Assembly: GCA_020137815.1 (NCBI GenBank)
Contig: CM035351.1
Coordinates: forward strand, 3,658,001 to 3,722,000
Direction: 5' to 3'
Length of the DNA stretch: 64,000 bases
From: Hormiphora californensis
Lineage: Eukaryota > Animalia > Ctenophora
A program made the translations under genes and the position numbers. Below are positions 1 to 64,000 of the stretch, one piece after another. Every line of letters begins with the position of its first letter. Positions within the stretch are counted from its first letter, which is position 1. The notes under the pieces are model-generated. The model was given only the letters and a program-made list of their open reading frames with translations, was not told the origin of the DNA and ran no database searches.

Positions 1-10653
<10,653 letters not shown>

Positions 10654-49091: not shown

Positions 49092-51550
<2,459 letters not shown>

Positions 51551-52066: not shown

Positions 52067-53934
52067 GGAGAGAGAGAGAGAGAGAGAGAGATAGAGAGAG
52101 AGAGGGGAGAACGGGCGAAGAGAGAGAAGGGGGAAGGGCGAGGTAAAGCGGGTGAGATAGGAAAAGATCTTACCGAAGAGAATAGAAAAATCGAAGTGTA
52201 CTTGTTGTTATGTTGTTGTATTGTGGGAAATCGATTCATGAATGATGACGTATTTATCATAATTGTAACAGACACAACCTTGTTTTGTTCATTCTACAGA
52301 AGCGACACGAGACAGTGTGAACAAACAGACATACAGACATACAAACAGCCCAAGAACTGAGTCTTTTTGTTCACAAAACATCGAATCTGCTGTAATGACC
52401 GTGTAGTGGTTGATAACTTGAGAAGAATGGAGGCTAGGGGACAAGGTTTGATGAGTTGAGATGAGAGAAAGAATAAAAGAGATGTCAATGTATATAAAAT
52501 GTGACACCAGATGAAATACATTGATCCAAGATATAAAAGAAGGAACCAGCCATATATACCCAGGATGAAGGAGGGTTGGTGAAGTAGAATAGGGGAGGGT
52601 TAGAGTAGGGCGGAGGGCCCATGGGCAAAGGTGAATAGAGAGGTTCAATATAGGAGGCCAGACTACCGAAACTGTGTTGTGACACACACTGGATTGCGAC
52701 GCACATTATGCACGTCTCAGCATATAACATTTGGAGGGCCTCCACAAGCTTGAGAAATGTTACCGTTCATATGCATTCGAGAAGATTTCAAATCTTCAAA
52801 ATAGTTATACTAATCATGTCAAGACATCCACATAAACAAACGCTTCAGCCTCTCTGAACTTATCCGGTTTAACAAATAAAGTCCGTGCCCCGGCTCTAAG
52901 CATAGTCAAACAAAGAGTTTCCATGAACACACGAGTACCCCCTGGTTGGTGGTCGATCAGACTATCAGTAATGCCTCTGAAGTGCCCTCAGAGACGATTT
53001 AAATGTCAAACTTTCTAAATTCCTGATTTAAGGAGAATATGAATATGAATATGAACTTCACAATTTATATCAAGTCAATATAAGAAAATATATGACTCTC
53101 CCGCTCTTACACTATACGTATAAAATATAGTTAAAAATTAAGTACATTAATATACGCTTCTAGGCCGAGGCTAATAGCACAACAGCAGTTACCTAAAGCG
53201 GGACAAACACACACAGACGAACCAATGAGACGGGTAACAATGAGCTGAGAGCTAAACGGACAGATAGATTTAACCAGGTTTAATAAATTACTAAAATCGA
53301 AAAGAAAAAGGCGAATAAGTTAGTTAAAAATACGGTAGTTACAAAACACCACCACACATACACACACACACACCGACACACACACACACACACCGACAAA
53401 CACACAGAACTCACACTCAAACTCACACTCACACTCACACTTATACCCCAACACCCAAAAAATAAAGACATACACAAAACACAAATAAGTTAAGTTAAAT
53501 AAGTTAATTAAAAAATGGTCATCTCACAAGAGAACACAAAGGTGCACACACAAACGGACACAGCACACCTAGACTACTTGGAAACAGTAAATCATGTTCA
53601 GCACACACATAATCGTTTACATAAAAATCGTTTACATAAAAATAGTAAGATTGTCATTGATAAACACATACTTATCATCACTTTCGAAGTGTTCATTTAC
53701 AGTCTGCAGGAATAACTGCACTTTCAGCCGTTTTCGTAACGGTACACGTTTCTTGTAACTGTTTTCTCCTGGCCCATACTCGGCCAATTCTCGACTACCC
53801 TCAGACTCTACTCCACATCTCAGTTGCCAAGATCCTACTAACCCATACACCCACCACACACAAACGAACAAGAATACGCACTCAAAAAACCCTAGCTCTG
53901 AACAATATGTGGAGGACGTCTCTCCTAACTCGGG

Positions 53935-56160
53935 ATGGTGGTGAAGTAGGACGGATGGTGGAGGATAGGAGTGATGGTACTGTCTAGGACAGCTGATAGA
54001 GGATAGGAACAGGATGATGGAGGATAGGATGGATGGTGAAGGATGGATGGTGGAGGATAGGAAGGATGGTGGGGGATTGGACGGATGGTGGGGGATTGGA
54101 CGGATGATGGAGGATGGGAGAGATGGTGGAGGATAGGACGGGTGGTGGAAAGTTTGACGAAAGATGGACACGGTGCACCAGAAGGATCGTCAACCCAAAG
54201 TTGAGCCCACAAAACAAACTTTTGTTGGGGGTGACCCAGGAGGCCTTCCTGAACATCCCCACGGTGAGAAAAGTATATGTTATCGGGGGAAATTTTTGTT
54301 AAAATCGAAAAAACTGGTTTTTGGTCCAAATTTGTGCATAGCTTACTTGACTGCCGTTTGATGAAATATCTGATTGACATAAAATAAGTATACAAGACCT
54401 ATTTTTGCACGAGGAATCGATTGCCGGTGGAGAGAAATCTCTAAAATGACCGGAAAATTGTCAAATATGGGAATTTTGTCATTTTTTTGAGGTTTTTGGC
54501 CCTTTAACCATTGAAAACGTTGAGATAGGAAGTTGGCAATAGCGTCAATCGTTAAAATGGTCATTTTTCTACGGGACCCCAAAATTTCATGTATATCCGA
54601 TTCATTGTTAGATTTTGGCAAACTATTGAGATGTGCTTACTGAAAAAATGATAACTTGATTTTCTCGTTTTTTGCGATTTTTTAACTTTTGACAGAATTC
54701 TGATTGAAATGGCCAATCAGGGCCATGCTAAAGTTGTTTATGGGACAATTTTCGACCAAAATCCAAGATTTCATGCAAATCCAATGACAGATCATTGATT
54801 TATAGAAAGTTGAAAAAGGCAAAAAAGGCCAATTTTTACCATGAAAACAAAAATACACATTTTTTCTTGTCAATTTCCATCAACAACTGGTACCCTACCT
54901 ATTTTTGTACGTAGAATCGATTGCCGGTGGAGATGATCCTCTCAAATGATTGGAAAGCGGTCGAAATGCCATTTTTTGGAGGTTTTTGGGCCTAAGGTGA
55001 GCAGGGCTATTTTATACAAAAAATGGCATTTTGACCGTTTTCCAATGATTTAAGGGGCTCCACTCCACCGGCAATCGATTTTACGTGCAAAAATAGCTTG
55101 GGTACCAGTTGCTGATGGAAATAGACGGGAAAAAATGTGAATTTTTATTTTCATGGTAAAAATTGGCCTTTTTTGCCTTTTTCAATTTTCTATAAATCAA
55201 TGATCTGTCATTGGATTTGCATGAAATCTTGGATTTTGGTCGAAAATTGTCCCATAAACAACTTTAGCATGGCCCTGATTGGCCATTTCAATCAGAATTC
55301 TGTCAAAAGTTAAAAAATCGCAAAAAACGAGAAAATCAAGTTATCATTTTTTCAGTAAGCACATCTCAATAGTTTGCCAAAATCTAACAATGAATCGGAT
55401 ATACATGAAATTTTGGGGTCCCGTAGAAAAATGACCATTTTAACGATTGACGCTATTGCCAACTTCCTATCTCAACGTTTTCAATGGTTAAAGGGCCAAA
55501 AACCTCAAAAAAATGACAAAATTCCCATATTTGACAATTTTCCGGTCATTTTAGAGATTTCTCTCCACCGGCAATCGATTCCTCGTGCAAAAATAGGTCT
55601 TGTATACTTATTTTATGTCAATCAGATATTTCATCAAACGGCAGTCAAGTAAGCTATGCACAAATTTGGACCAAAAACCAGTTTTTTCGATTTTAACAAA
55701 AATTTCCCCCGATAACATATACTTTTCTCACCGTGGGGATGTTCAGGAAGGCCTCCTGGGTCACCCCCAACAAAAGTTTGTTTTGTGGGCTCAACTTTGG
55801 GTTGACGATCCTTCTGGTGCACCGTGTGGAGGATAGGACGGATGGTCGAGGATAGGACGAATGGTGAAAGGATGCGACAGATGGTGGTGGAGGATATTCC
55901 AGATCATGGTGGATGATAGGACGAATGGTGGAGGATAGGACGGATGGTGAAGGATAGGATGGATAGGATGGTGGAGGATAGAGCATATAGCATATGGTGG
56001 AGGATAGGACGAATGGTGGAGGATAGGACGAATGGTGGGGGATAGGACGGATGGTGGAGGAAAGGACGGATGGTGGAGGATAGGACAGATGGTGGAGGAT
56101 AGGACGAAAAGTGGAGGATAGGATGGATGGTGGAGGATATGATAGTGGTTGAGGATAGAA
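53935..56160. repeat. Degenerate about 19-bp minisatellite GGATGGTGGAGGATAGGAC, interrupted by the Chapaev-like element
   Basis: The same unit occurs on both sides of 54169-55826. Confidence 0.85.
54169..55826. mobile_element. Chapaev-like (CMC superfamily) non-autonomous foldback element
   Basis: TGGA|CACGG...CCGTG|TGGA (4-bp TSD, CACGG termini); about 680-bp nearly identical inverted arms, which explains the mirrored ORFs in the track. Confidence 0.9.
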
Positions 56161-56269
56161 TCTATGAAAGGATTCAGAGGTCAGGATTCAGGAGGTCAGA
56201 GGAAATCGAAAGATCATTCAGGTTACGATCATACTAGGTATTGTATGTATGATATCATAGGAACGGAAG

Positions 56270-59215
56270 TTAGCCATAGGCAATGTTGAACAGGTGAGTC
56301 TTCAGTGATTTCTTGAATGTTGCTACAGACTCTGATTTCCTGATTAATTTTGGAAGTCTGTTCCAGAGTTTAGGTGCAGCAATGCTAAATGCTTTCTCGG
56401 TAACCTTGTACTTGCAGTGGTACTCCTCTAATCTTGTGTCATCGTCATCTACTCTGAGTTTCTTGGACTTCGCCTGCCTCTTCTGGATCATCTCAGTGAT
56501 GTAGCATGGAGATTTACCATTAAGTGCATTGTATACCATTAGGCACATTTTGTACTTGATGCGTTGGTTGATTGGAAGGAAGTGGGATTTCTTTCTCAAT
56601 TCGGTTACACCTCTTCTGCTGCGCTGACCGTATATAAATCGTGTGGCCGCGTTTTGGAGTACTTGGAGACGTTTTATATCGGATTCCTTCGAACCAAGGA
56701 GTAGGGCATTACAGTAATCGATCCTGGAGTGTATCAGGGTGTTGACAAGAAGAGTCTTCTGGTTCTTGTTTAGCTTACTAGCTATCCTCCACATGTTTAC
56801 CAACTGTAGATTGCCCATCTGGACTATCCGTGTTACATGCTTGGTCATGTTTAGCTCTTTATCAAATATTACTCCCAGGTTCTTGGCTACTTCAGTTACA
56901 ACTGTATCCTCATCTTCTGTTATGGCGACTGTATCAGGAGCTTCCGATTTATCCCATTTGTTGTTAAGTATCATGACCTCCGTCTTGTTAGGATTCAACT
57001 TGAGAAGATTTTGAGCCATCCATAGTCTAATATGAGCAACACATTTTTGTACCTGGCTCATAGCTGAAATTAGGTTTTCAGGCACAAAAGATATAGAGAG
57101 CTGTGTATCATCTGCGTACATATGTATCTTTAGATTGTATAGCTGAGCAATCTTCTCCAGGTCACGGGTGTAGAGTATGAAGAGAAGGGGCCCCAATATC
57201 GATCCTTGAGGGACTCCGATTTTGATGGTCGTGGTAGCAGATTCGTTCGGTCCGATCTTCACTATCGCAGTTCTATCATTCAAATAAGACTCTATCCATT
57301 TGAGAACTCTGCCAGTGATTCCATAGTCTTGCTGTAGACGTTGAATGAGCTTAGAGTGAGATATAGTATCAAAAGCTGCCGATAGATCGAGCAGCACAAG
57401 GATCACTTTTGTTTTCTTGTCCATCTGTATTAGAGTGTCGTTTACGATCTTCAAAGTTGCAGTCTCACAGCTATGGTGTGAGCGATACGCAGACTGAACC
57501 TTGCTAAAAAGTCCATTGCTCTCAATGTGCTCAGTGAGTTGATCGGCAACACATTTTTCTAGGATCTTGGACACAAAGGAGAGATTAGAGATCGGTCTGT
57601 AGCTACTGAGCTCGTCTGGGTCCAGTTCTTTGTTTTTCAAGAAGGGCCGGATAACAGCGGATTTTAAGTTGGCTGGAACCACTCCGTCCGATAGACTACC
57701 GTTCACAATCTTAGAGATAATGGGGACGAGTTCTGTCAGAGAACCACCTACCATGGTGGATGGAATAGGGTCGAGAGGACAGTGTTTCTTGTTCATGCTC
57801 CGAACAGTTGATACAAGTTCGGCGTCAGACACTGTCCTAAACTTGGAGAGTACCGGGCAGTTATGAGCAGATAGTTCATGGGGAATAGTTGGCAGATCAG
57901 CTGAGTAAGCAGGGTCCTCTTTAATTGTCTCATAAATCTTCTCGATCTTGGATTTAAAGTAGTCCATCATCTTGTCTGGAAGCTTCTCAGGCTCATCTGT
58001 GGTTGGTAACTGCTTTGGAACTTTCTCTTTGCCAAGAAGATAGTTAAGGATCTGATAGATAGCAGCAGGATTACCTTCAGCGGCTTCAAGGCGTATTTGG
58101 AAGAACATTCTTCTGGCTCGAGTGAAAACAAGCTTTGCAGCACGGATTTCAGTGATAAACTCCTTCTCTGCATCTAGCACTTTGTCGTGGGGGACGGGTT
58201 TGCCCTTGTTTTTCTTTTGTAGGGCTTGTTTAAGGGTTTTCCTGTATCTTCGCTCAGCCTTCCTTCGCCTTCTAAGGGCATTGTAGCACTCTTGGTTAAA
58301 CCACTGTGGTTTGCTGGAGAGTTTGATGTCTTTATCCTCAATCGGTGCCACTTCATCTAGTATCTGTACAAGAGTAGTGTTATAGAGTTCAACACATTCC
58401 TCAACGGTCTTTGGAAGAGGTTGTTTACAGAGTTTAGATTGGAGTATGTAGGTTTTCAGGGTTTCAATCGATAGTTTCTTCAATGATCGTCCAGTAACTT
58501 TCTTAGAGATTAGCTTCCTGTTCGCTGACCCACAATGTAGATGAAAGTCAACGAGAAAGTGGTCTGGAGCCTCGGGGGTCGGGATAACATTCACAGAGCT
58601 TACAATAGGGACATCCTTCGTCAAAACAAGGTCCAGGGTTCCTCCTAGGATATGGGTGGGTCCTTGAACATGCTGGATCCATCCATGGTCTTCCAAGGTT
58701 TGCAGGAAACCGTTTGCAAGAGTGCATGTAGGCTTTTCGATGTGTATATTGAAATCCCCGGTTATCATCAAATGGCCAGACTTCGAAGAGAAAGAGGACA
58801 AGAAAGCTTCAAAATCGTCCAGAAACTGTATCTGCTTAGGTTGGTTTGGAGGGCGGTAGATTACTGCTATTCTTGTGAGATCAATACCTGGACCGTAAAT
58901 AGTGGCTTCAAGAAGCTCAAAGGTTAGGAACTTTTTCTTCGGTTTATATTTCTTTACATTGATTCCATCCCTATAAATGAGTGCCACGCCCCCACCTCTG
59001 CTACCTCTAGCCACATTGAGTAAATTGAAGTTCAGCTCAGCGATTTCTCTTGAGAGGGCTTCATCATTAGGGGATAACCAGGACTCAGTAATGCATAGTA
59101 CATCTAGTTCCTGTTCGGCGGCTAGAATTAGTACTTCTTCAGTTTTGTTTCGCAGTGAGCAGCAATTAAGATTACCGATGCGAAGATAAGGGACATTGAG
59201 CAGATCTAGTTTTTT
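56270..59215 (-). CDS. LINE ORF2: AP endonuclease + reverse transcriptase (no upstream AUG)
   Basis: GNLNCCSL, CITESWL, RGGGVAL, IYRPP, GDFN, TLDL, DH; YRPISNL, DLSAAFD, GVPQGSILGP, YADD. Confidence 0.96.
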   Translation of the reverse strand, partial: KKLDLLNVPYLRIGNLNCCSLRNKTEEVLILAAEQELDVLCITESWLSPNDEALSREIAELNFNLLNVARGSRGGGVALIYRDGINVKKYKPKKKFLTFELLEATIYGPGIDLTRIAVIYRPPNQPKQIQFLDDFEAFLSSFSSKSGHLMITGDFNIHIEKPTCTLANGFLQTLEDHGWIQHVQGPTHILGGTLDLVLTKDVPIVSSVNVIPTPEAPDHFLVDFHLHCGSANRKLISKKVTGRSLKKLSIETLKTYILQSKLCKQPLPKTVEECVELYNTTLVQILDEVAPIEDKDIKLSSKPQWFNQECYNALRRRRKAERRYRKTLKQALQKKNKGKPVPHDKVLDAEKEFITEIRAAKLVFTRARRMFFQIRLEAAEGNPAAIYQILNYLLGKEKVPKQLPTTDEPEKLPDKMMDYFKSKIEKIYETIKEDPAYSADLPTIPHELSAHNCPVLSKFRTVSDAELVSTVRSMNKKHCPLDPIPSTMVGGSLTELVPIISKIVNGSLSDGVVPANLKSAVIRPFLKNKELDPDELSSYRPISNLSFVSKILEKCVADQLTEHIESNGLFSKVQSAYRSHHSCETATLKIVNDTLIQMDKKTKVILVLLDLSAAFDTISHSKLIQRLQQDYGITGRVLKWIESYLNDRTAIVKIGPNESATTTIKIGVPQGSILGPLLFILYTRDLEKIAQLYNLKIHMYADDTQLSISFVPENLISAMSQVQKCVAHIRLWMAQNLLKLNPNKTEVMILNNKWDKSEAPDTVAITEDEDTVVTEVAKNLGVIFDKELNMTKHVTRIVQMGNLQLVNMWRIASKLNKNQKTLLVNTLIHSRIDYCNALLLGSKESDIKRLQVLQNAATRFIYGQRSRRGVTELRKKSHFLPINQRIKYKMCLMVYNALNGKSPCYITEMIQKRQAKSKKLRVDDDDTRLEEYHCKYKVTEKAFSIAAPKLWNRLPKLIRKSESVATFKKSLKTHLFNIAYG

Positions 59216-60660
59216 GAATGTAACTGCTGCAACTGTTGGCGGACAGGGCACAATCTATCTCCACTGTGGTGACGGCTGGCCTCGGATTTGAATGTATCAG
59301 AACTACTGCAGTTAATACAAAACAGTTTTTTCCTATCGGTACAATCCTTGACATCGTGATTATCTCCACAAAGTTTGCAAACTAGTACTGAGCTGGTGCA
59401 CTCAGTGGTCCTGTGGTTGAAACGGTGGCATTTAATACACTGTGGAATGTGGAAACGTTCCACAACATTAAGTCGGGATGTTGCATAGTATATTTTACCG
59501 GCGTCAAGGAGACGCTGTTGTGCGGGAATCGGTAGACGCAGGCCAATGGTACATTTATCCTTATTCCGGTAGTGACTTTTGATGTACACGATGGTTACCT
59601 CTTCAGTCTTGAGCCATGGGTTTTTGAGTTGGAGCATGGTTAGCACTTTATCCTTAGCTTGGTCGTTTGACAAGGATTCGATGTTTTCAGGTACATTCAG
59701 TATAGTCACTTTAGCAGTGGAGGATAGAGTGGTAACTGTTGCATCTTTAGGTATCGCCTCTGTGACTAGCTGTATTACTGCATCAATGTTAGTTGATTCA
59801 GGGAATCCAATCTTGATCTCTGCAGCATTTTTTGTGTCAAGGAACAGCATAGGTGTCTCGGCAAGGCAGTCACTTACAGACTTGGCTGTTTTACTGGAGT
59901 CGTTAACACCGCAAGAAATAAGCAGCTTATGCACTCTCTCACGGGGTTGTGATTGGGTGGGGGTTTGTTGCTGGGTTTGTTTAGTTCTAGCCTGGGGATG
60001 GGCTTGGGGTTGTGGAGCTGCGGCAGTTGAATCAATTGCACTTGTGGCAGGTGTATTGATGTTCAAAGCATCCGAGTAGTTTGCTCTGTTACATTGGGGA
60101 GTAGCAATGTCTGTAGGCGCGTTTTCAGCTCGAGTGTGTTGCTGGGTGACGGTTTTAGTAGGAGCAGTTGCAGTAGAGGCGAAGATGCGGGCAGCGTTTT
60201 CAGCTATTTTATTGAATAATGCGCTGTCGGGTTGCATCAGTTGGGCGAAAACTAGACAAACAGGGCAAGACCAACCAGGGGCGTTATAAACACCATCGGT
60301 AATAGGGATGGACCCTTTTGCAATAGAGAGGAAATTAAGGCCAACACAGTCTGCATGATAGTGAGTATTGCAGGAATAGCAGTGTACGAGACCAGAGCTG
60401 CCGGGTTCAGTAGGGTTTTTGCCACATAGGCATTTCCTTGACGCCGAGGTGAGTATATGAGGCGTTTGGGTTGGGTCGCTCATGATGGTGGGAACGGGAC
60501 TTGGGGTGGAGAATAGTCCGGGTGTAGTCCCAGGGTTACACTGGGGGTCGATGTTTTTACGTACCGGTGTTGTAGTGAAACTGACCTCGGAGAATTCTTT
60601 ACCGTTCCGTAGTCCTCTCGTCAGCTCAGGAGTGGGACTGCTTCTTTGGCCGTCCATCAT
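59206..60660 (-). CDS. LINE ORF1 with PHD finger and C-terminal CCHC zinc knuckles
   Basis: CLC..CYSC..YHADCV..WSCPVC (PHD); CIKCHRFNHRTTEC, CKLCGDNHDVKDC, CINC..H..C; first ATG at 60660. Confidence 0.92.
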   Translation of the reverse strand: MMDGQRSSPTPELTRGLRNGKEFSEVSFTTTPVRKNIDPQCNPGTTPGLFSTPSPVPTIMSDPTQTPHILTSASRKCLCGKNPTEPGSSGLVHCYSCNTHYHADCVGLNFLSIAKGSIPITDGVYNAPGWSCPVCLVFAQLMQPDSALFNKIAENAARIFASTATAPTKTVTQQHTRAENAPTDIATPQCNRANYSDALNINTPATSAIDSTAAAPQPQAHPQARTKQTQQQTPTQSQPRERVHKLLISCGVNDSSKTAKSVSDCLAETPMLFLDTKNAAEIKIGFPESTNIDAVIQLVTEAIPKDATVTTLSSTAKVTILNVPENIESLSNDQAKDKVLTMLQLKNPWLKTEEVTIVYIKSHYRNKDKCTIGLRLPIPAQQRLLDAGKIYYATSRLNVVERFHIPQCIKCHRFNHRTTECTSSVLVCKLCGDNHDVKDCTDRKKLFCINCSSSDTFKSEASRHHSGDRLCPVRQQLQQLHSKN

Positions 60661-60784
60661 CTTCACGACTATCGATGTCGACTTACAGAGACTATCAATA
60701 TCGGGTCTCTCGTCAGATAGGTTGGCTTATGTTACGGGTTCGTCACCTCCCCCGTAACTTTATTTGCTAGATGCCATCACCTAT

Positions 60785-60827
60785 CTCAAATTAATTTGTT
60801 TAAAGTAGTGTTGAAAAGTTTGAAACT
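60785..60827 (-). other. Genomic copy of a ctenophore-type spliced-leader exon fused to the LINE 5' UTR
   Basis: Minus strand reads AGTTTCAAACTTTTCAACACTACTTTAAACAAATTAATTTGAG, matching my recollection of the Pleurobrachia/Hormiphora SL (unverified). It is followed by ATAG, not a GT donor. Confidence 0.72.
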
Positions 60828-61051
60828 TTAAAGAGCACGTGAGGCGAGCCATCTACGCGAGGAAAACACCGTTTTAGGCTCCAGTTACAGATTGGGACCT
60901 GACATCAGGGTTCACCTCCTATAATTTCAGATTCTAGTCTGTAACTGCGGCGTAAATCTGTTTTGATCAATCGCAGGTCAACAAACCTCAGGCCCCACTT
61001 TTATTGCGGACGATCAAAGATCGAGAAACAGCGATGTCAGAACAAAAACAA

Positions 61052-61758: not shown

Positions 61759-62827
61759 TCACCTTTCGTCCGTTTCTTCAACATCCGATGCATCGTAAAT
61801 GACAACTTTTGGTATGGGTGCCTGAGGGAGAACCTGTATAGTCAATACTGAACTAATTGAGGGTATACGCTGATTAATTGGATTGTTGGGAAATTGGAGA
61901 GCAGTGCATGGTGTATATTGATCGAGTTTGTCATTGGAAAGCCGTGGTTCCCAGCAATCACTCTGTCCGACCTGTCTCATTTTCTCACGGCTCACAACCA
62001 GCCAGTGTTCCTCATAATAATACACATCCACATGATCATATACCCCTACATATAATATGACTCTCCATCCCTCTCTTTCTCCCTGCCTCTATTTCCCTCT
62101 CTATAGATTAATTCCCTGTGATTGTTAGATAGTAGGAGACACAAAGAATATGATCGAGAAAATGATATTGCTTTCTGATAGTCCCCTACACACACGCAGT
62201 ACGCACGCATCTACACTATGTTGAACTATCTGATACTAAAGAGACAAATTCAGAGTCCACTGGTCTTACTCAACAATTCCTAGAATTGAAGGATATATCG
62301 TTTTCTGTCAATTCTAAGCTAGACACGCTCAGACAATGTCTCCTGTACAGCATAAAAAACTCTCATTTTTCAAGTTGATTACCCTTATTCAACAAATTTT
62401 ACCGACAATCATACAGACTATTCTTAGTTCTCACACTGAAGATTGGGAGGGGTGACATTAGCCAACACTGTTAGTTGTGCAGTAGATGGTTTGCAGTTGG
62501 GAGCTGCAGTAGTGGATCTTGCGTGTTCCGGAGGATTTTCAGAAAAAAATTACCTATTTTAAATGTCTAACCCAACCCCGGAACACGCGAGATCCACTGC
62601 AGCTACCAACTGCAGACCATATTCATCCAACGCGAACGGTGCCGCCAGCCCATTTGGATTGGCACAACAAAAGCAAAATGAGTAGTGAGTAGATAGAGTG
62701 AAAGACAACCTTAAACAAATCATTCTCCCCTCATTACCTTTTTCTGAGGTCCATCCTTGGTCTCTCCTAGTCCATGATTGTTGTTGTGTGAGCCCCCGTT
62801 CACACGGCGACTCTGAACACATCCCAT
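61759..62827 (-). CDS. Putative 54-aa N-acylated microprotein (exons 62827-62738, 61833-61759)
   Basis: MGCVQSRRVNGGSHNNNHGLGETKDGPQKK|VLPQAPIPKVVIYDASDVEETDER*; phase-0 GT-AG intron; acceptor CTCTCTTCTAG 2 nt before the ATG. Confidence 0.5.
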
Positions 62828-64000
62828 AGCTAGAAGAGAGTTGAAATGGTCAGAGAGGGAGAGATGTAGTGGGAGGAGGGAGGGGGTATAAGAGATGGAT
62901 TGATTGACACTTTAGGACTCAGACAAAGAGGGGGACACATATTCATGAGTACTCGAGGCAGAGGCAAGATAATGATTATATATAAATATTACGCCTGAGA
63001 TGGTAAAAGAGTGAGAGATTAGCGAGAGTGAGAGAGATAAGAATGTGTGGACTGGTCCGGGAGTTCGTACTGTTATTTGATCTCGGTGCTGCAATGCTTG
63101 ACAGTGTGAGAGAAGAAGAGAGAGAGGGAGGGAGTTCGTAAATGCTTATCTTCTAACGTTTTTAAGTGTGACGAAACATGGAGTAAGGAGTTCTAAGTGC
63201 AGCAGTGTTATAAGTTTTCATGTATCACTGCTAGCAGTATAATGAAACTTATACACTGCCAGCAGTATACATGAAACTTAACACGCGCAGTGTTATAAGT
63301 TGTACAAGCATGCTACTAAGAATTATTATATCTCAAATTTTACATGTCTCCTGTACAGCATAAAAACTCTCATTTTTCAAGTTGATTACCCTTATTCAAC
63401 AAATTTTACCGACAATCATACAGACTATTCTTAGTTCTCACACTGAAGATTGGGAGGGGTGACATTAGCCAACACTGTTAGTTGTGCAGTAGATGGTTTG
63501 CAGTTGGGAGCTGCAGTAGTGGATCTTGCGTGTTCCGGAGGATTTTCAGAAAAAAATTACCTATTTTAAATGTCTAACCCAACCCCGGAACACGCGAGAT
63601 CCACTGCAGCTACCAACTGCAGACCATATTCATCCAACGCGAACGGTGCCGCCAGCCCATTTGGATTGGCACAACAAAAGCAAAATGAGTAGTGAGTAGA
63701 TAGAGTGAAAGACAACCTTAAACAAATCATTCTCCCCTCATTACCTTTTTCTGAGGTCCATCCTTGGTCTCTCCTAGTCCATGATTGTTGTTGTGTGAGC
63801 CCCCGTTCACACGGCGACTCTGAACACATCCCATAGCTAGAAGAGAGTTGAAATGGTCAGAGAGGGAGAGATGTAGTGGGAGGGAGGGAGAGGGGGGTAT
63901 AAGAGATGGTTATTGTTATTTTGCACACTTCTGTGAAACTCAGACAAAAGAGGGGGACACATATTCATCGAGTTCTCGAGCGCAGAGGGCAAGATAATGT
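62336..64000. repeat. Direct duplication of about 640 bp (62336-62975 and 63344-64000), containing a short inverted-repeat element and the MGC exon
   Basis: Near-identical copies offset by about 1007 bp; similarity degrades at the window end. Confidence 0.85.

Follow-up and report, generated by a model that had tools for sequence, protein, structure and literature searches.

A 64,000-nt stretch of the genome of the ctenophore Hormiphora californensis (GenBank assembly GCA_020137815.1, contig CM035351.1, positions 3,658,001 to 3,722,000 of the forward strand; hereafter the window, to which positions refer unless a contig is named) contains, on its minus strand at 53038-60827, a long interspersed nuclear element (LINE) that begins with a DNA copy of a host spliced leader (SL). 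The element is an apurinic/apyrimidinic-type endonuclease (APE) LINE with two open reading frames (ORFs) and, in place of poly(A), a microsatellite tail. The ORF1 frame is 486 aa long, about 484 aa from its first ATG at 60660, which lies 124 nt past the leader. ORF2, which overlaps ORF1 by 46 nt (59206-59251), has an Exo_endo_phos domain at residues 29-224 (1.2e-12) and a reverse transcriptase domain, RVT_1, at residues 548-771 (2.4e-33); its 460 relatives include proteins of Mnemiopsis leidyi and sequences that are 89% and 67% identical. In addition to the endonuclease and reverse transcriptase, the features expected of a LINE are present in a fixed 3′-end, copies that are mostly 5′-truncated, and a target-site duplication. 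Its build, with a pair of ORFs and a (TTCATA)3 tail, would fit a putative place in a CR1/L2-like clade, as would the weak PHD-finger match in ORF1. An earlier annotation made from the letters of the stretch only, here called the sequence-only reading, described the LINE as full-length; this holds, with both frames open, although the element is not contiguous, as its 3′-untranslated region (UTR) is split by a palindrome (Table 1).

The 43 nt at the head of the element (60785-60827, minus strand) occur once in the window, with no occurrence expected from 100 shuffles. As proposed in the sequence-only reading, they are the spliced leader of the species. The H. californensis leader, reported on 56% of Iso-Seq reads, consists of this 43-mer plus one extra 5′ G (PMC8527503), and apart from that G the identity is complete. 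The 43-mer is also a perfect match to the exon of authentic SL RNA genes of H. californensis (L074/L075), in which the base preceding exon nt 1 is a C. The extra G of the published leader is therefore untemplated, and the copy in the window holds the complete leader, from nt 1. Immediately after it come ATAGGTGATGG and LINE sequence, so that a GT donor is missing; there is also no Sm site. None of the attributes of an SL RNA gene, namely a GT donor, an Sm site, stem-loops and a conserved upstream region, is present at this leader, and a comparison of the window with the intron and the upstream or promoter region of L074/L075 revealed no similarity, which bears out the earlier conclusion that this is not an SL RNA gene. 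The RNA data available were from two runs, both as assembled contigs only, so that they document presence and not absence. In the run that carries the same species label, 520 contigs match 60785-60827 only and then diverge into different sequences.

Copies of the family elsewhere in the genome establish where the element begins. The assembly searched (G000; 110.7 Mb in 45 contigs, chromosome-scale, in which the window is G000:C2:3658001-3722000) has nine matches to a 225-nt probe that spans the UTR and the start of ORF1, eight of which retain the 5′-UTR. A 3′-end probe matches 49 places, and at two of these the identity to the window is 100%, indicating a family that is young and mostly 5′-truncated. 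A copy on C3, L040, is 98.1% identical to the window over 5,003 bp and the alignment begins exactly at 60827, leader nt 1. The sequence-only reading had allowed that homology might extend upstream and so make the 43-mer an internal UTR segment, but homology within the family ends precisely at the first nucleotide of the leader; the upstream flanks differ at all family copies, those of the window and L040 being unrelated, and the same head is present on other chromosomes, as anticipated for full-length copies. Six of the eight 5′-UTR loci are SL-headed, one has a different leader of 42 nt, and one is truncated within the UTR. The six SL heads start at leader nt 1, 1, 3, 3 (or 2), 5 and 7, so that zero to six 5′ bases are absent, the pattern of ragged starts that is expected from reverse transcription. 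Three of the copies (L044 to L046) constitute a subfamily with the same UTR and a different ORF1. The leader sequence itself is invariant, which proves nothing in a test of leader versus UTR divergence because the copies have only 0-5 differences over 121 UTR positions. As a separate observation, L042 has a partial duplicate of leader nt 5-20, plus CACAT, ~40 nt upstream of its 5′-truncated leader (G000:C8, near 6717850), possibly a trace of template slippage or of a template switch at the 5′-end of the RNA. In metagenomes, the exact UTR pattern has no matches, and a profile of ORF2 relatives identified 80 distant loci (30-44% identity), none with a ctenophore leader.

In contrast to its ragged 5′-end, the 3′-end of the leader is exact, and the junction with the LINE body is fixed while the flanks vary. 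There are two junction registers (a slash marks the junction): GAG/ATAGGTGATGG in five copies, including the copy headed by the 42-nt leader, and GAG/GTGATGG in two, the seven loci being distributed over six contigs. The registers differ by exactly ATAG and in each case the body follows an AG, as expected of a splice acceptor; they coincide with the leader's terminal AG and the adjacent TAG, the two sites that the sequence-only reading had named as points of possible re-splicing. A DNA-encoded leader is, in other words, joined to the element body at a splice-acceptor position, the arrangement that defines an SL-tagged retrocopy.

Three explanations that require no splicing of the LINE RNA are effectively refuted: a template switch of the reverse transcriptase, from the 5′-end of an unspliced LINE RNA to a free SL exon or an SL RNA; integration of the LINE in an SL gene; and a false join in the assembly. 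There are precedents for the first two, as template switching generates U6-L1 chimeras in mammals and the NeSL, CRE and SLACS elements target SL genes. Template switching does not, however, predict junctions fixed after an AG, nor a second register shortened to precisely the next AG, and a switch to a whole SL RNA would have brought its intron, which is not present. Insertion into an SL gene, a possibility that had been raised at the outset, is at odds with an APE-type rather than a restriction-like endonuclease, with flanks that differ at every locus and with a window in which nothing resembles the intron or promoter of the SL genes, the region beyond the 3′-end of the LINE included. A chimeric join, also considered from the start, is excluded as an artefact of assembly because GAG/ATAGG is present at five loci and the form without ATAG at two more, over six contigs.

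We favour the explanation that the template RNA of this LINE was SL trans-spliced, then reverse-transcribed to its 5′-end and inserted, to which we assign a probability of about 0.88. Sequence comparison shows that the host SL was added to the LINE RNA at a 3′ splice site right where the 5′-UTR begins (...AG/ATAG/GTGATGG), that the LINE's own reverse transcriptase copied the mature RNA to its 5′-end, and that the 43-nt leader so became the first 43 bp of the new insertion. The source transcripts would start upstream of the element, either in the host flank of an SL-headed copy or in a native outron now gone from the assembly, and would be trimmed to size by trans-splicing. As the same event recurred in the family with two leaders and in two acceptor registers, the family propagates via spliced RNAs, with host splicing rather than transcription initiation setting the RNA 5′-end. 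Trans-splicing followed by full-length retrotransposition is well supported, and this part of the sequence-only reading stands; its further proposal, of promoter-free read-through and re-splicing, is neither shown nor excluded.

Several observations weigh against this explanation. The ATAG difference could also stem from a 4-bp deletion that two related copies have inherited, and the outron and acceptor AG of the GAG/ATAGG register were never seen in DNA for the window family. No RNA contig extends from the upstream flank across the start of the leader, and the depth over that flank is zero in both runs, in data that are limited to contigs; the LINE body is also missing from the same-species RNA contigs. 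Two contigs in the other run, from a seawater library, are 100% identical to the LINE on the UTR and ORF1, and are uninformative as to transcript starts or read-through. The near-match 9-bp direct repeat noted earlier is real, and is positioned as a target-site duplication, but at 8/9 it is imperfect, and no clear duplication was found for L040. Matches of 8/9 within 12-nt windows occur at 0.2% of random position pairs in the window (chance 0.002).

Trans-splicing of LINE RNAs in this genome is not confined to one leader or to one LINE family. A second type of leader, 44 nt in length, is present at G000:C2:1470661-1470704 (minus strand; L080); its first 13 nt are the same as in the main leader and it ends ...ATTGAG. 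There are 120 genomic copies, with mismatches almost wholly in the first bases, consistent with ragged 5′-ends, and at only one copy is this leader followed by GTAAGC, making C13:2741191-2741240 a candidate gene. L080 belongs to a sister LINE family, family C, with an ORF1 that is PHD-like and has a CCHC motif, and consists of the second leader, 14 nt that end CTCTAG, and then the LINE body. In a different copy of family C, L079, the head is joined immediately after the AG of that CTCTAG. The head of L079 (G000:C6:7794014-7794055) is the same 42-nt leader that heads L041 (L041:535-575; G000:C4:5640231-5640271). The assembly contains these two copies and no others, and a search of it revealed no gene for this leader, which is similar to the main leader over its first 16 nt. 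As it heads two unrelated LINE families at acceptors, this leader acts in trans; the alternative, that the 42-nt head of L041 is a cis-spliced host exon, was rejected as the same 42 nt head a different LINE family. According to the genome paper, every leader is more than 90% identical to a single sequence (PMC8527503).

The origin of the spliced RNAs can be accounted for in more than one way. A self-renewing cycle, in which promoter-less SL-headed copies are read through from host transcription units and trans-spliced again at the leader's terminal AG or the adjacent TAG, is a serious candidate, although at somewhat less than even odds. The sequence-only reading had suggested a search for a master copy with an outron in place of the SL, and there is none in the assembly: none of the nine 5′-UTR matches has a native unspliced 5′-end, although the family is young, with copies that are 98-100% identical. 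Both of the re-splice points predicted by such a cycle are observed as registers, and the GAG/GTGATGG copies are derivable from GAG/ATAG/GTGATGG sources. A 5′-end generated by self-cleavage also finds no support, as an Rfam scan of 60500-61000, which covers the 5′-UTR and 173 nt of the upstream flank, identified no ribozyme at E<=1 and no match to any other family. Set against this cycle are the lack of a read-through contig and the zero flank depth in both runs, an absence that means little in contig data, and the palindrome that splits the 3′-UTR of the window copy, which is adverse or neutral. Tandem leader relics, searched for as a leader 3′-end followed by a leader from nt 3 with <=2 mismatches, number zero genome-wide; this is also adverse, but not decisive, as a traceless re-splice would leave none. 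In family C, the 14 non-leader nt that L080 retains upstream of the acceptor argue that that family, at least, had native upstream sequence.

This last observation also fits the classical master model of LINE amplification, in which a few native copies with a promoter and an outron, missing from or unrecognised in the assembly, would make all of the spliced RNAs and the SL-headed copies would be dead on arrival. Three independent splice outcomes at one site would be as natural from a single master as from many sources. That none of the nine 5′-UTR matches has a non-spliced head, in an assembly of this size and contiguity, counts against the master model, which we consider only slightly less likely than the self-renewing cycle. 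It is still less probable that the leader, the 5′-UTR or both carry an internal RNA polymerase II promoter that starts at leader nt 1, so that the leader is inherited as DNA and not re-spliced. Internal promoters are usual in LINEs, intragenic elements are needed for transcription of the Ascaris SL RNA genes, and the leader begins with AGTTT, which follows a C in the SL genes and is initiator-like. A promoter of this kind does not account for at least three heads on one family (SL-A, the 42-nt leader and the register without ATAG), which need fresh splicing, and the ~300 bp of conserved sequence upstream of the SL RNA genes suggest that their promoter elements are external.

The bona fide SL RNA genes are few. 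SL RNA intron sequence is present at only 16 loci genome-wide, all of which were counted as SL RNA genes on the basis of intron similarity (Table 1). They share the conserved upstream sequence mentioned above, and their exon, to judge from the sequence of the C5 pair, leads into a GTAAGC donor, which is followed by stem-loops, a CCUUUUGG Sm-like site and a 3′-terminal hairpin. At C13, two genes (introns at 3191162 and 3191900) have no exact match to the canonical exon and may encode variant leaders. The 43-mer, in contrast, has at least 446 genomic matches at <=3 mismatches, more than 100 of them exact. A GT follows 89 of the matches; among the first 30 of these, two are SL genes and the others are repeat families with a body that starts with GT. 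An unbiased sample of 30 leader sites contained no SL genes and had at least 19 unrelated groups of downstream sequence, with most of the sites opening into a long ORF within 200 nt. When the first ORFs of 18 other SL-headed groups were compared with Pfam, four had matches: to a reverse transcriptase, to a PHD finger, to an oxygenase plus an esterase and, weakly and well below the cutoff, to a zinc-ribbon. About 16 leader loci are SL-A genes, one may be an SL-B gene and the rest, in the samples examined, are heads of retrocopies. The genome paper counted 718 leader sequences, which were treated as spliced-leader loci with mis-mapped reads (PMC8527503). Given 16 SL genes by intron and none among the 30 sampled sites, these 718, the window locus among them, are mostly heads of retrocopies. 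Our literature search returned nothing on the nature of ctenophore leader loci.

Inspection of the SL-headed loci revealed additional structures. In L012, L018, L019, L022 and L029, two leader-headed copies meet at their leader 5′-ends (~position 1500) in a head-to-head palindrome. The first 11 nt of the leader (AGTTTCAAACT) are self-complementary, which could allow a cDNA end to fold back and prime an inverted second copy. These five loci and L001, L002, L008 and L010 have CTGATGA-like ... GAAAC motifs just after the leader that resemble a hammerhead core; Rfam identified no hammerhead in them at the gathering threshold or at E<=0.05, and returned only spurious microRNA matches on the palindromes. 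An SL-headed repeat in L059 (1579-3021, plus strand), present also in L071, has an unusual ORF1, in that its first ORF encodes a 2OG-Fe(II) oxygenase (AlkB-like) and a GDSL-like esterase. In L012, a metazoan signal recognition particle RNA gene (1816-2111, minus strand; Rfam 240 bits) adjoins the SL-headed palindrome.

The remainder of the window element and its surroundings are as follows. The 1.66-kb palindrome sits inside the 19-nt tandem array of the 3′-UTR, through which L040 and L043 run straight; the alignment with L040 stops at 55826 and picks up again at 54168. It could be a foldback-type element or the product of a hairpin-mediated inverted duplication. Three copies of the LINE share the 3′-end point at 53038, with different flanks beyond. 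The sequence-only reading had placed the LINE in sense between two minus-strand genes, and the minus strand could be confirmed for the downstream neighbour, a Rab-like exon at 49894-50229. Two identical ORF pairs upstream of the LINE, at 62519-62822 and 63526-63829, lie ~1,007 bp from each other and point to a tandem duplication.

Table 1. Features of the window, SL RNA genes and 5′-UTR copies of the LINE family. Window positions are given without a contig; a slash marks the junction of leader and body.
Feature	Location	Strand	Basis or remark
Upstream copy of putative target-site duplication, CTCTTTAAA; last A is leader nt 1	60827-60835	-	Repeat comparison
DNA copy of complete spliced leader (SL-A, nt 1-43), first bases of element	60785-60827	-	Published leader, SL-gene exon, start of L040 homology
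ATAG, second of two tandem splice-acceptor AGs; absent in L045 and L046	60781-60784	-	5′-end alignment
Rest of 5′-UTR, 96-100% identical in subfamilies A and B	60661-60780	-	Sequence comparison
ORF1, weak PHD-finger match	59206-60660	-	PHD E=1.4e-4, under Pfam cutoff
ORF2, 993 aa, APE and reverse transcriptase	56270-59251	-	Pfam
3′-UTR part 1, with 19-nt tandem array (55826-56158)	55826-56269	-	Copy comparison, repeat analysis
Nested non-LINE insertion: near-perfect palindrome, 811-nt arms (98% complementary), 38-nt spacer	54168-55827		Absent from L040 and L043
3′-UTR part 2, rest of 19-nt array (53933-54149) and (TTCATA)3 tail (53038-53055)	53038-54168	-	94% identical to L040 continuation
Downstream copy of putative target-site duplication, CTCCTTAAA; 2 nt past (TTCATA)3 tail	53027-53035	-	8/9 match
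SL RNA gene divergent pair (L074/L075)	G000:C5:6431270-6432080		
SL RNA gene divergent pair	C9:4528213-4528946		
SL RNA gene divergent pair	C11:221784-222596		
Single SL RNA gene	C12:4023186-4023273		
Cluster of nine SL RNA genes	C13:3181579-3195339		
Window copy and L040	C3 (L040)		Complete leader, then ATAGG
L042	C8		Leader from nt 5
L044	C7		Leader from nt 3
L045	C2, near 6.258 Mb		Leader from nt 3 or 2; GAG/GTGATGG, without ATAG
L046	C10		Leader from nt 7; GAG/GTGATGG, without ATAG
L041	C4		Different 42-nt head, joined ...AAGAG/ATAGG
L043			Truncated at UTR nt 26

Every new copy of a LINE must carry or find a promoter, a problem of the 5′-end that LINEs are known to solve either with internal promoters or with self-cleaving ribozymes that act within co-transcripts. 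Use of the host SL machinery, with the leader written into DNA, would be a third way of making a LINE 5′-end, for which the genomic evidence is clear. The Hormiphora leader loci need to be re-read accordingly, including gene models that share a spurious first exon, and the system provides a testable model of the interplay of trans-splicing and retroelements in an early-branching animal. It is possible, and offered here tentatively, that the SL-headed LINEs and many other SL-headed retroelement families gave up their own promoters. The 3′-end of a retro-copied leader would be a ready trans-splice acceptor, so that sense copies within host transcription units could be cut from read-through RNA, re-capped with a fresh leader and rendered translatable and mobile again. 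If true, SL trans-splicing would be the engine of retroelement propagation in ctenophores, and every insertion a portable acceptor able to create new host 5′-ends.

Several known systems share parts of this organization. In the R2, RTE and L1Tc LINEs, the 5′-end is made from a co-transcript by ribozymes that resemble that of hepatitis delta virus. There, as proposed here, RNA processing and not initiation defines the 5′-end, which permits expression from upstream host transcription; the differences are that in H. californensis the host spliceosome would add a leader, Rfam identified no ribozyme in the 5′-UTR, and the insertions are dispersed rather than site-specific. NeSL-1, CRE1/2, SLACS and CZAR encode a restriction-like endonuclease and interrupt SL RNA genes, the remainder of which follows at the opposite flank. 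They too are retrotransposons that physically adjoin SL sequence, but the Hormiphora LINE has an APE endonuclease, occupies dispersed sites with different flanks and has no SL intron on either side. Within the library of papers that we searched, nothing was returned, for ctenophores or other organisms, on autonomous LINEs with DNA copies that start in a host leader. In Hydra, ~30% of the Iso-Seq reads from transposable elements carry an SL (PMC12220107), and host SL trans-splicing there also acts on transposable-element RNA. The Hydra report concerns RNA only, whereas nearly all full-length copies of the Hormiphora family have the leader fixed in their DNA. Retrogenes of dinoflagellates carry DNA-encoded SL relics and are recycled cDNAs (PMC6050394, PMC5585692). 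As in the explanation favoured here, a trans-spliced RNA was reverse-transcribed and integrated, the leader heads the retrocopy in DNA, and re-expression by new trans-splicing has been proposed. Repeated cycles in dinoflagellates leave truncated leader relics in tandem, whereas in H. californensis the leader is complete or 5′-ragged and single. The dinoflagellate retrogenes are, moreover, host genes, whereas the cargo in H. californensis is an autonomous LINE that encodes its own APE and reverse transcriptase.

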